In this document: piece after piece, positions 2,961 through 9,771 of the stretch
Numbering within the stretch: position 1 is the stretch's first letter
Layout: each line of letters opens with the position of its first letter
NCBI GenBank assembly: GCA_973895155.1
Contig: OZ316897.1
Coordinates: 11,307,832 to 11,371,831, forward strand
Length of the DNA stretch: 64,000 nucleotides
Direction of reading: 5' to 3'
DNA from: Marsupella aquatica
Lineage: Eukaryota > Plantae > Marchantiophyta
Position numbers and translations under genes: made by a program
The notes under the pieces: generated by a model
Told to the model about the DNA's origin: nothing
What the model saw: the letters and a program-made list of their open reading frames with translations, nothing else
The model's database searches: none

Positions 2961-4959
2961 GCGAAGATTAAATTTCAAGGTGGTTGCACAATGCTATTGG
3001 GAGGGGAAATTTTTTCCTCCCTTTTCCCATTTCTTCCAACACTCCTTTGCCATTCCCTTCCTCCCCCTTTTCTTCCCTTTTGCACAATTAAATAAAGAGA
3101 AACACACAATTAAACAAAGAGAGAGAAAAAAAAAAACCTAGAGAACCATGATTTTGTGGTAGTTCACTTGAGTAGAGACTGATAGGTCTTGGGATCAACT
3201 GTTGTGGGCTAACTCTTCCCAACTATTCTTCCTTTTCTTTGGGATTTCACAAATTTCCCTTAAAACAAAAAAACAAAGAGAAAAAAAAGAGGGAGTGAAA
3301 AGCAAAATTAACCCATTTTCTTCCTTCCAAATTCTTGTACTGTATGCAAAAAGCCAAAAAGTTTCTCATGCCTCAAAAGATTTTCTTTCTAAGGTATCTA
3401 CTTTAGTATTTCAAAATAACACACATTTTCGATGATGTAACATAGGAGTCATCCACACATAGTATGTATTCTACTTTAAAAATAAGAATATTTTTGGACA
3501 TTTCTGGTCAATCAATCCAAGAGTCCACAGACATCATTTTAAAAATTGGACGGCTGAGGTTTGTTCCCTCTATTTCCAAATTTTGTATGCAGATGAAGTT
3601 TATGGCGGGTTTGCATATGATAGTAGTTGATTGTGCAAGTCTAAAGTTGACTTTGATTTCTCATGATAAGCATATTTGAGTATGTGTTTGGATTTTGGGT
3701 CCAAACTTTCTATTATGAGTTCTCATTTGTGACACCTTCACCTATACCATTACTACCCTGCTGGTATAGCCACCCAAATCTTGTTACCTATATGGGGTCT
3801 ACAATCTGAGGAATTTTTTTAATATACTTTGATATTTGTATCTTTAGGGAACCTGTTTAATATCATATCTTGCCTGTCAGAGATGTCAACTATACCCTTA
3901 CCTTGTTGGTATACGGACAACTCTATACCCGCCTAGGTAACACTTATTACATTGACTCAATAGAGTAAGAGACCCCATTGCATATGGGTCTCGGTAACTG
4001 CACATCAAAATATGACATATACTATGTATGGCACCTCTGCATACCGTGATAATCCTAGTTTTTTTCTTTCAATCAATGAATGTAACCACATTTTGATGTG
4101 TGATTACCAGCAGGGATTGCATATTAGCATACTAGTGACAATGGAATCTCCTGGAACGAGGGCCTTCAAGAGGCTAGAGAGAGAGAGTCTCACACAAAAT
4201 CAAATGCTACTCTAGTCCATTATCACTTCCACACACATAAGTGCAACATTAGTTGTGATTATTTCTACAGTAGCAACAGAGCCAGCTCTGGCAATGCCAC
4301 ATACATATTAGTACATTCAATGAAAAACCATATTGTCACCTTTGATAATTAATTAATTATTTATTTATTCAGCTCACTAAGATACAATAATTATGTACTA
4401 GATGACAAAAAATAGTGAAGCCAGTTCTAGGATGACCTTGTTATAGGAGGGAGCCCATCCCCACATTCCACACAGAAAGCTATTTGCCATGGATGATGTG
4501 TAGCTCTCATTATATAGTGCACACCATTCAGTTACACTAGGAAACATGGGCTCCACTTTTTATGGTGAATATAATATAATGTTCAACACGGGCAAAAATG
4601 AGCAGTAGCCTGCAGGGAATGGGGCCCTTTTATATGGGCAGGTGTGGGTTAAAGTCTAGTAAATTATCATGATTTAACCGTAACACATTTTGGTAATGGA
4701 AAGTTTGTCATCCATACTCAGCCAGTATAACAAGTGTGCAGCCCAGTGCGCCTTTCGCAGTAACAGAAATAGGAAGGTATTAAGGAGCGTCACTGTCGCA
4801 GAAGAAAACGAATGTTTCTAAATAAATTATTTGGAAGACTCCTTAAACCACACCTGCCACTATAAAAATCTCATTCGATGTGCCACTACTCACCATAAAA
4901 GGTGGAACACTAGCACCTTTTGTGGAATACTTGCCAAAAAAGAATTTGCAGTAAGCACT

Positions 4960-5345
4960 TTTTTTGGAGCTCAAAGCCCATTCTTGAACCTGTGCTGTTT
5001 ACAATGAGAGGTAGATTTTGCAATCAGCACCTTTTGTGGAGCTCAAAGCCATTCTTGAACCTGTGCTGTTTACAATGAGAGAGGTACCTCCACAAAACCC
5101 ATTCTTGAACCACCCATTCTTGAACCACCCATTCTTGAACCAAAGCTCAAAGCCATTCTTGAACCTGTGCTGTTTACAATGAGAGAGGTACCTCCACAAA
5201 ACCCATTCTTGAACCACCCATTCTTGAACCTGTGCTGTTTACAATGAGAGGTAGGTTTTGCAGTCAGCACCTTTTGTGGAGCTCAAAACACATTCTTGAA
5301 CTTGTGTTGTTTACAATGAGAGAGGTTTACAATGAGAGAGGTACG
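4960..5345. repeat. Complex tandem repeat downstream of the U-box/ZZ gene stop (attcttgaacctgtgctgtttacaatgagagaggt and cccattcttgaacca units)
   Basis: About 6 copies of gtttacaatgagag and about 9 of attcttgaac are directly visible. Confidence 0.85.
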
Positions 5346-5384: not shown

Positions 5385-8300
5385 TTAAGTTTTGTTTTTA
5401 AATGTAGGGGACATTTCAATAAATCGCATTCTATCGTATGCCTGAGCTCTGGGTCCAAAAGGTAGATCCATACGCAAGAACTCCCATTCTCGGTGACCAC
5501 CTTTCTCGAAACAGCTGAGACACAGATCATAATCGACTTTAACTAGAGAACCAAATCTCGGCCCAACTATGGGCTTCGTTGGATCGCACCCGTCACAACG
5601 TGCATTGTGAGAGACATTTGTCCAACTCTCTGCTGCTGAATCCTCCGGTAAAGCCTGGACAAGGTCGAGCAAGCATTTTCAGAGCAATCTGACTCCAGCA
5701 AGCTAACCCTGCAAGCTACTCCAGCAAATTTCTAGCATGCAGATGAGTCATTGGAATCCAGTGGGAGTAATGGGAATTGAAACACAAACTAATTATCAGT
5801 GGACATCTGCCCTCCTGTTTTCTAAGTTTTTAGAAGTAGAAACTCTCTAACACTGGTCGATTATGATTTTCCATAATATTAACTTTCAGAAAAAAAATCT
5901 CTTAGTTTGACGCGAAGATTAGCTTACCATCTCTTTGTTAAGAACATTGGAAACAAAAGATTGAACGATTCATCGATTTGCAACGATCTTATTTTCCATG
6001 TTTTTACCCACAACCTGGACCAGCTCGTTATCCACATACCTGAAACAGCTTGGACATTTCCAAAAGCTTTGTATTCTGGTTGCGACGCACAACCTTGTTT
6101 TCCTCCAGCTTGGACATATCAACAACACTTTTCTGTTGAGACTCAAGAATCGACATTTCAATAACTCGCACTCGATCGAATGTTTGAGCTCTGGGTCCAA
6201 AAGGTAGATCCATACGCAAGAACTCCCATTCTCGGTGACCACCTTGCTGGAAACAGCTGAGACATAGATCATAGTTGGATACTAGAGAACCGAATCTTGG
6301 CCCAACGATGGACTTCGTTGGATCGCACCCGTCACAACCTACACCCTTGTGAGAGACCTTCGTCGACCTCTCTGCTGTTGAATCCTCTGGTAAAGCCTGG
6401 ACAATGTCGAGGAGCACTTTAGAGCATTCTGCCTCCCTAAGTTTGCAGCTACTCCAGCAATTTTTTTAGCATGTAGATGATTCATTGGAATCCAGTGGGA
6501 CTAATGGAAATTGAAACACAAATCAATTACCAGTGCACATCTCTCTTGTTTCCTCGAAGTAGAAACCTTCTAACACCAGTAAATTCAGATTTTCCAAAAT
6601 ATTAACTTCCAGAAGCAAAAACAGTTTAGTTTGCCGCTAAGATTAGATATGAACCATCTTTTTGTTCAAAGAATTTGAAACAAAAGAAGGATTCATCGAT
6701 TCACGACAATCTTGTTCTCCAGTTTGTTCCCCACCACCTGAAACAGCTGGCTATCCACAAACCTGATACAGCTTGGACAATTCCATAAGGTTAGCTTTCC
6801 GAATCGCTTTCTCCAGTTTAGCATCAAGGTCCAGCTGCAGTTCGTCTCTCTTCTCGCGGCACTCTTTGTCATTAGGTGCCCACTGCAACACATTTTTCAG
6901 CATTGTCAATGCTTCCGCGCTATGGCCTGTATTGGCTAATTCGAGGGCTTCATCCCGGTACGACTTGCGCTGACCGTAAAACCTTCTTTCTATGTCTTCG
7001 TCCCGAAACTTTTTGAACAGGCGCCTCCGCAGAGATACATCGTCACACGTAATAACCAATTGCTTTTGCTGAGTCAGATTATTCTTGAAAACCGTCAGCC
7101 TGTCGTAAGTTTCACCGTCAGTACATTTGACAGGATCAATCATGAGTTCGGCGGTGATGGGGTCAAGGCAGTCGTCGTGGTCATCCTCTGCTGGTGATGG
7201 TCTTGAAGAAGATTCTTCGTCTACAGTCAGATCTTGTAAGCTCGCCAACACCTGCACTCATTAAGACCCAAAACAAAACACATGAGCCAGGTCAGAACTC
7301 CCCACAATGACAACAACGGAGAGGCAAGTCTCAGGCAGCTAATCTTTGTGACACCATAGCTCCCGGACGCGAGTCCATCCAATGCGCAAAATCAATATGG
7401 TTTTTGACTCGATGGAAAAATGGGCAAGTGCCTACAATGTTTATTTGTCGTCTGGCGATATCTGTAGTAGGCCCAAAACCTACTGTAGTCAAAAGCAGAG
7501 GAGCCTAAACCTAGCCCAAGCTAGACATTACATAGACGCTAGACATTAATTTTGAATTTGCAGGGTCTAAATCCTTCTGAACGGCCCAAAAAATTCTTCA
7601 TTCACAGCCACTTACTAGACGACGCTCGATGATGATGTACCATCGAGGGATTCTAAAGTCGGGTCTAAAGTTATCCTCTTAAACTCATGGATGTTTCACA
7701 AAGCTTAAAATCCGACAAACAATCTGTTTCCTCAGCGATTTTGTACTAAGTCTGCACCATAAACAAGGAAACTGCCTTCAGCAAAGTGCACCTTCTGAAT
7801 CGCAGCTATGCAAAAGGAAAAGTCCGGTCTACAAAAAACGGAAATTATTCTTGAACACCGAAATCGGAAGGCTAGTCCAGTCGAGCCATAATTTTGCCGA
7901 TTGTCAGCCTTCTCAGACGTACTGTACTCCACTGTTTTACAGAACTTATAAGGTGCGGGCTAAGAAACATTGCCCACGGCCTTGCCGATATGCCACAGGC
8001 CCTGTCCGACAAATACTTGTTGTCCGCTCACATCCAACCGGGACTGTTCCCAGATGTCACGGCAGTAGGAACGAATGGACACAAATCTTGTGCAGAGCTG
8101 TGGAGTTCTCACATCTTCTACGAATTTCTGCGTGTCAGTTGAAGTTTCGACTTGAACTTCGTTTTGCCGGACAATGGAAACCAAGGACTGGATCCTATGG
8201 TCTTGCCTCTTCATTCCCACCACCAGCGGTTGCAGCAGCTTCCGGATCTCAATGGTTTCTGCATGAGTCTTTGCGGTATTTAGCGATGAGAGCTCAATCA

Positions 8301-9377
8301 TCCTGGATCCAAAGTCGTCCATTTTCTTATCCGCATCGATGGTAACCTGTCCACATTCAGCACAAGTTGAGTCCGAGCGATTTACTATGCCGATACCACA
8401 TCTGGAATTCAATCTACACTGTATGAAACGGGCGTTTCAAGATACGTACGCTGTACTCATGGATCGAGATCCGTCACTGTCCACCAGTAAGACATTGAAA
8501 TGATTTAAGGCTCCTAATAACTGCGGATTTATATCCACCGCAAGCTGTCAATGGTCTTGCAGCAAAACATTCTGTTCAGTGGACATTAAACTAAGAAATT
8601 GAAATGATTTAAGGCTCCTACTAACTGCGGATTTATATCCACCGCAAGCTGTCAATGGCCTTGAAGCAAAATATCAGTAGCAGTCCTCGGCCAGGGCTCG
8701 GCCAGGTCCATAGATACGAACCTCAAGGGTAGTGACAAATAGCTTCACTTGAAACTTATTGATTAGATCTTGCCGAAGCCTCTCTAGTTTGTCCTTGATC
8801 TGCCTTGCATCCCAAAATTGGAGGAAGCTTCCCTTCCTCAAGTTGTCCTCCAAGTAACTGGTGACCGCATTCAAATCCGTTTCCAAAGATTCTGATTACG
8901 TTCAAGGCCCGTGCAATCCCACAAATGCCAGGTTGAGGTGGGTTAGGTTACCATACTCAAGGTACTGACGTAGCAAGAAATTGGCAACAATGAAGTTAGA
9001 TCCTCGCAGCAGAGCCAGTGCATACATTACTTTAATAACTTACAGGGAATCGCAGCTTAACATTGCAGCTGGCTCCTGCACCAGTCTGAAACTTACTGTG
9101 CCGCTTTCACTTGAATTGCCTAAAGGATAAGAGAATGTGAGTACGTGAGTGCAGAAAACGTACCCAAGGCCCATGATTTCTCGCTGGGTCGCTGTTTCTT
9201 CAGGAGATCGATGTTCTCGTGCAAGGACTTGATAAAATACTCGATTTCTTGCGCAATGACGGGGTTGTGCTTTTTGATGGCATGCACCTGCTGCAAGGTG
9301 ATAACCAACTTCCCCACAGCATTGAAGACGGTAAAGAAAGGGAAGCCAGTACTCAAGTCCGCCACCGAGTCCGCCAT
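5385..9377 (-). CDS. Predicted 577-aa protein: MLKL/UND-like four-helix bundle + coiled coil + degenerate U-box + TPR-like hairpin + 2x NBR1-type ZZ zinc finger. Exons 9377-9164, 8891-8722, 8346-8113, 7251-6763, 6396-6040, 5654-5385
   Basis: All five introns are GT-AG and phase-compatible (1,0,0,0,0); exon lengths sum to 1734 nt. Motifs: FLQFWDARQIKDKLERLRQDL (four-helix-bundle pattern), CLDPITAELMIDPVKCTDGETYDR (U-box), AEALTMLKNVLQWAPND (TPR-like), CDGC...IVGPRFGSLV..YDLCLSCF...LRMDLP twice (plant NBR1-type ZZ). Confidence 0.75.
5400..6790. repeat. Tandem duplication (~720-745 bp unit) of intron + ZZ exon
   Basis: Both the intron text (tcattggaatccagtggga...taatgg.aattgaaacacaa) and the exon text recur with a ~730-745 bp offset. 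Confidence 0.9.
8491..8673. repeat. ~80-bp direct duplication in intron 2 of the U-box/ZZ gene
   Basis: ttgaaatgatttaaggctccta.taactgcggatttatatccaccgcaagctgtcaatgg at ~8495 and ~8599. Confidence 0.85.
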
Positions 9378-9771
9378 GGACAAAGCATATATGCACAAAT
9401 CAGGCCTCTCAAGTCAATCCGAATGATGCAGCCTCCGGTGTGAATATTTCCCCTTCAAAAGACTAGTCCCGGACGGTACGACTCAATTCGATCTATGCGC
9501 ACAAAGAGTCAAGTGAATTGGTGCGAAAATTGATACCATCGGCACGAGGCCACAATCGACAACTCACGAGCAGCTTCTCAAAATAATCCATTTCTCTCTC
9601 TGTAAGTAGTTTCACCGCGTTTTCACTTCACCCTTAGAAATTGATTACTCGTTGATCAGGGTCCGCAACGTTGTCTCCGCCTTGAGAAACTGCTGCGCAC
9701 TTGCTCGGTTAAAAGTAGAGGCACTCAGGTCAAACGCTCTGATCCTGCATGGAATCAATTATATCAACTTT

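Follow-up and report, generated by a model that had tools for sequence, protein, structure and literature searches.

Within a 64-kb window of the liverwort Marsupella aquatica genome (contig OZ316897.1; the window is the whole stretch analysed, and all coordinates are positions within it), we analysed a predicted gene on the minus strand that encodes a helical N-terminal domain, a U-box, a TPR-like cap and two ZZ domains. An initial annotation, made from the letters of the DNA, had joined six open reading frame (ORF) fragments through GT-AG splice sites into one protein of 577 amino acids. The six minus-strand fragments lie between 9377 and 5385 as proposed, and the frame stood: the GT-AG exon set, with six exons and five introns, totals 1731 nt, which is exactly 577 codons (Table 1). 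We conclude that the locus probably holds a real and functional six-exon gene, a prediction made from its sequence and from comparison with relatives.

Splice sites alone are weak proof of such an exon set, because chance in-frame GT-AG combinations are very common; enumeration of all pairs gave hundreds of them, with no discrimination. The first four exons align end to end and collinearly with proteins of Calypogeia fissa, at 48-58% identity per exon. Exon 1 corresponds to residues 12-69 of C. fissa P0002 and P0088 (48% identity), exon 2 to residues 71-126 (66-121 in P0089; 52-57%), exon 3 to residues 127-204 (122-199 in P0089; 53-58%) and exon 4, the best-conserved part of the gene, to residues 205-349. 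Intron positions in the C. fissa gene match those here, and the third exon measures 234 nt in both. Homology to C. fissa thus appears to settle the first three junctions, as support independent of the splice signals. The two ZZ junctions are supported indirectly, by phase, duplicated splice sites and constraint.

Further information came from a diverged relative, which we call organism B and to which two of the four public sequencing runs holding the locus belong. Among the organism B indels listed (12 of 30), all 12 fall outside the six exons. Two frame-breaking indels, of 14 nt net at 8078-8094 and of 11 nt at 8691, lie within the raw ORF fragments and beyond the chosen splice sites. Because the net 14-nt deletion sits just past the exon 3 donor, inside the longer ORF fragment, the 8078-8094 stretch should be intron. 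Longer versions of exon 3 were excluded at both ends by the C. fissa exon alignment and intron positions: with the acceptor at 8418 the exon would gain 24 residues (CRLNS...), and in the homologues it opens with VTIDADKK or VVIDGNNK; donors near 8031 and 8017 disagree with the homologues and fall where organism B has its 14-nt net deletion.

Table 1. Exons of the predicted gene and the duplicated unit behind its ZZ pair (window positions; a slash marks an exon boundary).
Feature	Positions	Strand	Details
Exon 1	9377-9164	-	ATG 9377-9375; 71 codons + 1 base; donor tgg/GTACGT, phase 1; bundle helices 1-2
Exon 2	8891-8722	-	170 nt; acceptor CAG/aat, donor gag/GTTCGT; bundle helices 3-4
Exon 3	8346-8113	-	78 codons; acceptor GGACAG/gtt, donor gat/GTGAGA; brace-like second helical block between bundle and U-box
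Exon 4	7251-6763	-	163 codons; U-box ~7009-7185; TPR-like three-helix cap ~6766-6993
ZZ1 exon	6396-6040	-	119 codons, phase 0-0; Pfam ZZ 6351-6235; 41-residue linker up to duplicated donor cag/GTATGT
ZZ2 exon	5654-5388; stop 5387-5385	-	89 codons + stop; Pfam ZZ 5612-5502
Duplicated unit, ~735 bp, two tandem copies	6799-6152 and 6076-5410	-	last ~37 nt of preceding exon with donor, intron, ZZ exon

The two ZZ exons belong to a tandem repeat. Direct-repeat families D3, D4 and D7-D12 share a spacing of 723-742 bp and an identity of 79-93%, and the two copies of the unit are 80% identical in the intron, 90% in the ZZ core and 55% in the ZZ1 tail. Comparison of the ZZ1 and ZZ2 exons gave a synonymous divergence (dS) of 0.25 and a nonsynonymous divergence (dN) of 0.10 (dN/dS 0.40), from which it follows that the duplication is not recent and that coding constraint has acted since. 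Both ZZ exons are of phase 0-0, and the duplicated unit brings its own donor and acceptor, both intact. The ZZ1 tail is open into the duplicated donor in both organisms; in organism B its 41 codons carry seven substitutions, which change three residues and introduce zero stops. As far as can be read from the DNA, these data show that one intron and its ZZ exon were doubled, with the frame kept, through tandem duplication of a unit of about 735 bp.

We considered whether the twin-ZZ protein might not be the main product, either owing to alternative 3′ ends or exon skipping or because the locus is silent or decaying. Shorter products are easily drawn: ZZ1, with its symmetric phase, can be skipped without loss of frame, so that exon 4 joined to ZZ2 would give 458 amino acids, and read-through of the exon 4 donor meets a stop after three codons (6751-6753) to give 372. 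Both duplicated splice sites, however, are intact. Although divergence is greatest in the ZZ1 tail, with its 55% identity between copies and its seven substitutions relative to organism B, the tail is stop-free over 41 codons in both organisms, and three of the seven substitutions alter residues. All runs holding the locus are of DNA (4/4), yet a dN/dS of 0.40 at a dS of 0.25 implies selection on at least one copy and probably both, and the organism B indels among those listed spare all six exons. The ZZ dN/dS, together with the frames kept in organism B, therefore indicates coding constraint that supports a functional gene, and we regard a minor or decaying twin-ZZ product as improbable.

Other features accompany the gene. 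A short upstream ORF (9355-9390) begins with an ATG about 12 nt ahead of the main ATG, in another frame, and runs for 11 codons, overlapping the proposed start. Intron 2 contains a 104-bp tandem duplication (8488-8674; 94% identical), where organism B has deletions of 81-129 bp. Within exon 2, positions 8766-8890 are also covered by a second contig, from a run of the source organism itself (organism A), with 10 differences in 125 nt, which suggests, at the level of sequence, that the genome contains a paralogue at another locus. Immediately beyond the stop, on its 3′ side, nested short tandem repeats (4941-5342) with unit lengths of 71, 104 and 15 nt and identities of up to 100% carry the motif CCCATTCTTGAACC...GTTTACAATGAGAG; this block may be a small repeat element marking the end of the gene.

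Both ZZ domains matched Pfam ZZ (PF00569; gathering cut-off 21.4 bits), ZZ1 with E = 4.3e-7 and 30.1 bits and ZZ2 with E = 5.8e-8 and 32.9 bits. The four cysteines of zinc site 1 are present in each (CDGC...CLSC), and the second site (CxxC and two His) is absent from each, with GSLVK in place of CxxC and one His after it. Plant NBR1 ZZ domains likewise lack the second zinc site (KSxVK in our alignment). Both domains align with the NBR1 form of liverworts and seed plants, which has four Cys and the motif KSxVKxDYDLC. The proposal of two NBR1-type four-Cys ZZ domains is thus borne out by the Pfam matches and by alignment to the plant NBR1 form. Compared with NBR1 and p62, the gene shares a four-Cys ZZ without the second zinc site, reading RFGSLVKVDYDLC where the NBR1 motif is R[YF]KSxVKEDYDLC, but its ZZ domains have a two-residue insertion after the first CxxC. 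Of the NBR1 domain set it has only ZZ, whereas the liverwort NBR1 proteins P0114 and P0124 carry PF00564, PF00569, PF16158 and PF24932. Because PB1, the NBR1 central (FW) domain and UBA are absent, the gene is not an NBR1.

Among solved structures the closest relative of the ZZ2 exon was the ZZ domain of p62/SQSTM1 (E = 2.4e-7); PRT1 (with bound degron peptides), KCMF1 and BIG also matched. The p62 ZZ requires D129, R139, D147 and D149 for binding of N-degrons and N-terminal arginine (PMC6197226). ZZ2 retains equivalents of all four, and the ZZ1 pocket reads D, R, N, D, with Asn at the p62 D147 position beside a one-residue deletion. Like this gene, PRT1 and KCMF1 combine a RING or U-box-type ligase domain with ZZ in one protein, but the type of ligase domain and the order differ, and their ZZ matches are weaker (E = 2e-3 to 2e-2, against 2e-7 for p62). 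An Atlas feature search with ZZ2 returned generic ZZ clusters only, with no separation of NBR1 from other ZZ proteins.

Exon 4 matched Pfam U-box (PF04564) at 28.3-28.4 bits, above the gathering cut-off of 21.4 bits (E = 1.8e-6). An AlphaFold2 (AF2) model of the window's own exon 4, built with 68 relatives, had a predicted local distance difference test score (pLDDT) of 90.4 and a predicted template modelling score (pTM) of 0.78. Foldseek searches with this model returned U-boxes for the top ten matches and most of the list (E4B, OsCIE1, GmPUB13 and CHIP), at probabilities of 0.96-1.00 and target template modelling scores of 0.48-0.66. The U-box call is upheld by all three. Against solved structures, the family profile best matched the U-boxes of UBE4A and UBE4B (2.3e-8 and 3.2e-5). 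The first E2-contact loop (DPI, the E4B L1107 loop) and the core U-box residues are kept, with pLDDT above 90 in the model.

Three helices with the family motif VLxWAPxDxEC follow the U-box. In a homologue model this cap (residues 303-368) aligned with the TPRs of FKBP52, PP5, Cpr7 and APC6 at Z scores of 7.3-8.3 and root-mean-square deviations (rmsd) of 1.2-2.4. Pfam TPR families were sub-threshold in P0002 (TPR_19, E = 0.068) and gave no match in the window's exon 4. The TPR-like hairpin that the initial annotation had described is present, in that these helices, in the homologue model, align structurally with the TPR domains of FKBP52, PP5 and Cpr7 at Z scores of 7.4-8.3 and rmsd of 1.8-2.4.

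The N-terminal fold was modelled on the C. fissa homologue P0002. Its AF2 model shows four long helices across residues 3-129, where block-mean pLDDT mostly exceeds 85, and four further helices that extend to residue 218 at pLDDT 63-80. A four-helix bundle had been proposed as MLKL-like; the bundle itself is well supported by this model, but the MLKL link stayed sub-threshold. Designed bundles headed the structural search (Z = 11.5). The natural matches included the coiled-coil (CC) domain of Rx (Z = 9.6, rmsd 2.6 over 101 of 107 residues), the CC-R domain of NRG1.1 (Z = 8.8 over 104 residues) and AtMLKL3 (Z = 7.7 over 161 residues, second helical block included), scores to be read with the tool's warning that helical bundles often give Z values below about 13. 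Pfam MLKL_N (PF22215) was the only N-terminal family matched repeatedly among 35 members, sub-threshold in six of them (best E = 8.9e-4) and not in the window's own exons. Among the families listed by HMMER at E up to 5, the N terminus had no match to MCAfunc (PF19584) or PUB10_N (PF25368). An Atlas language-model feature search placed MCAfunc clusters first (0.87-0.89), followed by MLKL_N and RPW8 (0.86) and PUB10_N (0.81-0.83), all below the 0.9 under which Atlas scores are leads only.

Other searches with the N-terminal region returned few or no candidates. HMMER found no relatives of the domain outside the family, a word-seeded search with P0006 residues 1-205 recovered nothing beyond the family, and for this domain the profile against PDB sequences matched just syntaxin, vinculin and designed coils, all with E above 0.01. 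When the complete homologue model (427 residues) was submitted to Foldseek, no structure matched at E up to 0.001 and MLKL was absent. Canonical UND-bearing plant U-box proteins (PUBs), sought among the weak U-box matches, yielded none with such a domain. Taking the model-based comparisons together, the bundle is likely kin to the plant MLKL_N, RPW8, MCAfunc and UND group; a specific link to MLKL is not established. Like MLKL and the CC and CC-R domains of nucleotide-binding leucine-rich repeat (NLR) receptors, the protein is predicted to have a bundle of about 125 residues followed by further helices. Unlike them, it has no pseudokinase and no NB-ARC (Pfam), no conserved N-terminal motif was seen, and its structural scores are within the range for unrelated helical bundles.

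The gene is not alone in its architecture. A search with exon 4 across 1.84 billion cluster representatives found 87 relatives, of which 61 had an E-value of 1e-10 or lower, and the family numbers at least 61 sequence clusters. It is represented in Riccia, Marchantia, Calypogeia, the moss Ceratodon and the fern Adiantum, and the nearest full-length relatives are three C. fissa proteins. Most members share the helical N terminus, U-box and cap and differ in their rear parts, which comprise protein kinase, SPRY, ARM, EF-hands, WD40, ubiquitin, hydrophobic Cys-rich tails or ZZ. Kinase domains were found by Pfam in five other members and not in this gene. Alignment with these relatives shows that members of this bryophyte and fern family share, as a conserved core, the front 372 residues predicted here. 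The framing of the protein as a new kind was accordingly overstated, since the gene is one of a family with swapped rear domains and Riccia sorocarpa has bundle-U-box-cap-ZZ genes of its own. Nor is a helical domain joined to a U-box a new layout: an MCAfunc/UND domain ahead of a U-box, whether or not ARM repeats are present, has been described as the most ancient such combination in streptophytes (PMC8049495). A domain-based catalogue of Marchantia PUBs exists (PMC11579444). Our literature search found no on-target paper on plant proteins with U-box and ZZ, nor on U-box with MLKL or HeLo-type domains in bryophytes.

Comparison with UND/MCAfunc PUBs (AtPUB13, AtPUB45 and the type III proteins with MCAfunc and U-box; PMC8049495) places the family beside them. 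Both have a helical domain of about 200-230 residues directly before the U-box and a rear domain that picks partners, and the family member P0005 has ARM repeats as classical PUBs do. In contrast to these PUBs, the family's U-box is nearest to the E4/UFD2 type by sequence and is followed by a conserved TPR-like cap, the rear domain of this gene is ZZ-ZZ and not ARM, and the family was found only in liverworts, a moss and a fern. On sequence grounds the gene is best placed among the U-box ligases, in a bryophyte and fern clade that is undescribed, with a lineage-specific twin-ZZ rear module.

Three tandem genes of R. sorocarpa, R1sor_003441 to R1sor_003443 (P0050, P0105 and P0118; annotated as hypothetical or ZZ-type domain-containing), resemble this gene in having the helical N terminus, U-box and cap followed by an NBR1-type ZZ. 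They differ in that the ZZ is single, stands after a coiled-coil spacer of about 250 residues and has a hydrophobic tail behind it. This Riccia ZZ shares 65-79% identity with the NBR1 paralogues of its own species, against about 35% with the ZZ of our gene. In a phylogeny built from the U-box and cap, this gene groups with ZZ-less Calypogeia genes (support 99) and the Riccia ZZ gene falls in another clade (support 99). From these separate clades and ZZ identities, it follows that an NBR1-type ZZ joined the scaffold at least twice.

NBR1 is usually single-copy in plants, and R. sorocarpa is thus unusual in having at least five NBR1 paralogues (P0114, P0119, P0120, P0128 and P0131; R1sor_008678 to R1sor_008686) with neighbouring locus tags on one contig. 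Among other members, C. fissa P0049 (CAM6092395.1; 824 amino acids) has an NB-ARC at 327-548, the family U-box and cap at about 590-712, a C-terminal hydrophobic tail and no bundle; its N-terminal part resembles, by eye, an alpha/beta-hydrolase. P0049 looks like a hydrolase-type liverwort NLR with its repeat region replaced by the U-box module. P0002, P0006, P0004 and P0050 also end in hydrophobic, often Cys-rich tails, which this gene lacks; the P0002 tail (ACLPCSICCIPC) has a weak match to LITAF-like and recalls PLAC8 motifs, which suggests membrane anchoring.

Elsewhere in the window, no further copy of the family was found outside the locus, and neighbouring ORFs of at least 110 amino acids had no Pfam match. 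The stretch at 400-1750 is GC-rich (53%), strongly C-skewed and of low complexity, with long Ser/Pro/Leu-rich plus-strand ORFs that have no Pfam match.

We favour, with moderate confidence, a reading of the protein as a modular U-box protein of the E3-ligase type in which the ZZ domains serve as ligand reader. The ZZ domains would bind ligands, perhaps protein N termini, given that ZZ2 keeps the p62 acidic pocket and ZZ1 has one pocket residue changed. The U-box would recruit ubiquitin-loaded E2, so that the bound proteins, or the protein itself, could be ubiquitinated. By analogy with UND in other plant U-box proteins, the helical N terminus may serve oligomerization, regulation or partner binding. 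The variable rear domains of the family fit this reading, because E3 ligases that pick substrates vary their rear domain.

Several observations weigh against a ligand-reading ligase. We know of no ligand for NBR1-type plant ZZ domains, and those here are without the second zinc site. The Pfam U-box match is confined to the first half of the profile (positions 4-37 of 73). The second E2-contact loop (family consensus SPF, aligned with DPF(N)R of E4A/E4B) is deleted in this gene and in P0001-P0003, and the Trp of the family DRWT motif is replaced by Leu or Phe in this subclade; the initial annotation overlooked the loss of this E4B-type loop. In E4B this loop carries F1141 and R1143, which lie on the E2-binding surface (PMC5655547). 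The N-terminal fold was taken from the homologue model and not from the window's protein, and the four public runs holding the locus are all DNA contigs that run through the introns, leaving the five junctions without transcript support. With the loop lost, ligase activity in the subclade may be weak, proceed via another E2 surface or be gone. Judged from the models, the predicted ligase activity is plausible but uncertain.

A second interpretation is that the protein is an immune sensor and executioner, with the bundle as a membrane-permeabilizing death domain of the MLKL, RPW8 or CC type, the NBR1-derived ZZ domains as integrated decoy bait, and the U-box restraining the protein or signalling by ubiquitination. 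The alignment of the bundle with the Rx CC, the NRG1.1 CC-R and AtMLKL3 among natural proteins is what this would predict, as are the recurrence of MLKL_N as sole N-terminal Pfam match and the Atlas score of 0.86 for MLKL_N and RPW8. All of these likeness scores, however, are below the tools' reliable levels, designed bundles score higher (Z = 11.5), HMMER found no N-terminal relatives outside the family, and conservation between this gene and its closest relatives does not extend to the first helix. The joining of NB-ARC to the U-box and cap in C. fissa P0049 and the high variability of the rear domains also suit an immune role, but such variability is equally expected of E3 ligases that pick substrates, and a helical domain before the U-box is ordinary in plant PUB ligases (PMC8049495). 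The two independent gains of an NBR1-type ZZ, including a Riccia stretch 65-79% identical to that organism's own NBR1 paralogues, fit a bait, and the missing E2-contact loop fits a non-catalytic role. On balance we consider a sensor and executioner unlikely.

The protein could instead be a non-catalytic adaptor, its U-box a pseudo-ligase fold, that bridges ZZ ligands to partners of the helical N terminus, for example in autophagy or at membranes. The deletion of the loop equivalent to E4B F1141 and R1143 (PMC5655547), the replaced DRWT Trp and the partial Pfam match (profile positions 4-37 of 73) point this way, but the DPI loop and core U-box residues are kept in a region modelled at pLDDT above 90, and exon 4 is the best-conserved part of the gene; a pure adaptor therefore strikes us as quite unlikely. 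We attach a similarly low probability to the wider conjecture that bryophytes and ferns hold an undescribed set of immune or proteostasis guards, in which a death-domain-like bundle would be wired to a U-box and cap and a sensor, or a bait for pathogen effectors, would be plugged in at the rear, the NBR1 ZZ at least twice independently (in Riccia and in the leafy-liverwort lineage of this gene).

Returning to the favoured reading of a modular U-box protein, its interest lies in a group of plants where such ligases are almost unstudied, even though ligases of this class have a central place in plant immunity and stress signalling. The family keeps a front module of bundle, E4-like U-box and TPR-like cap and shuffles its rear, with SPRY used as in animal TRIM ligases, and the locus is a clean case of a new two-domain protein formed by in-frame tandem duplication of an exon and its intron. 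If the ZZ domains do read N termini, the gene would encode a new N-recognin-like plant ligase. Should the bundle prove to kill cells, it would newly connect ubiquitination with autophagy receptors and cell death in early land plants, and if the guard class is real, NBR1-mediated autophagy would be a recurrent pathogen target in those plants.

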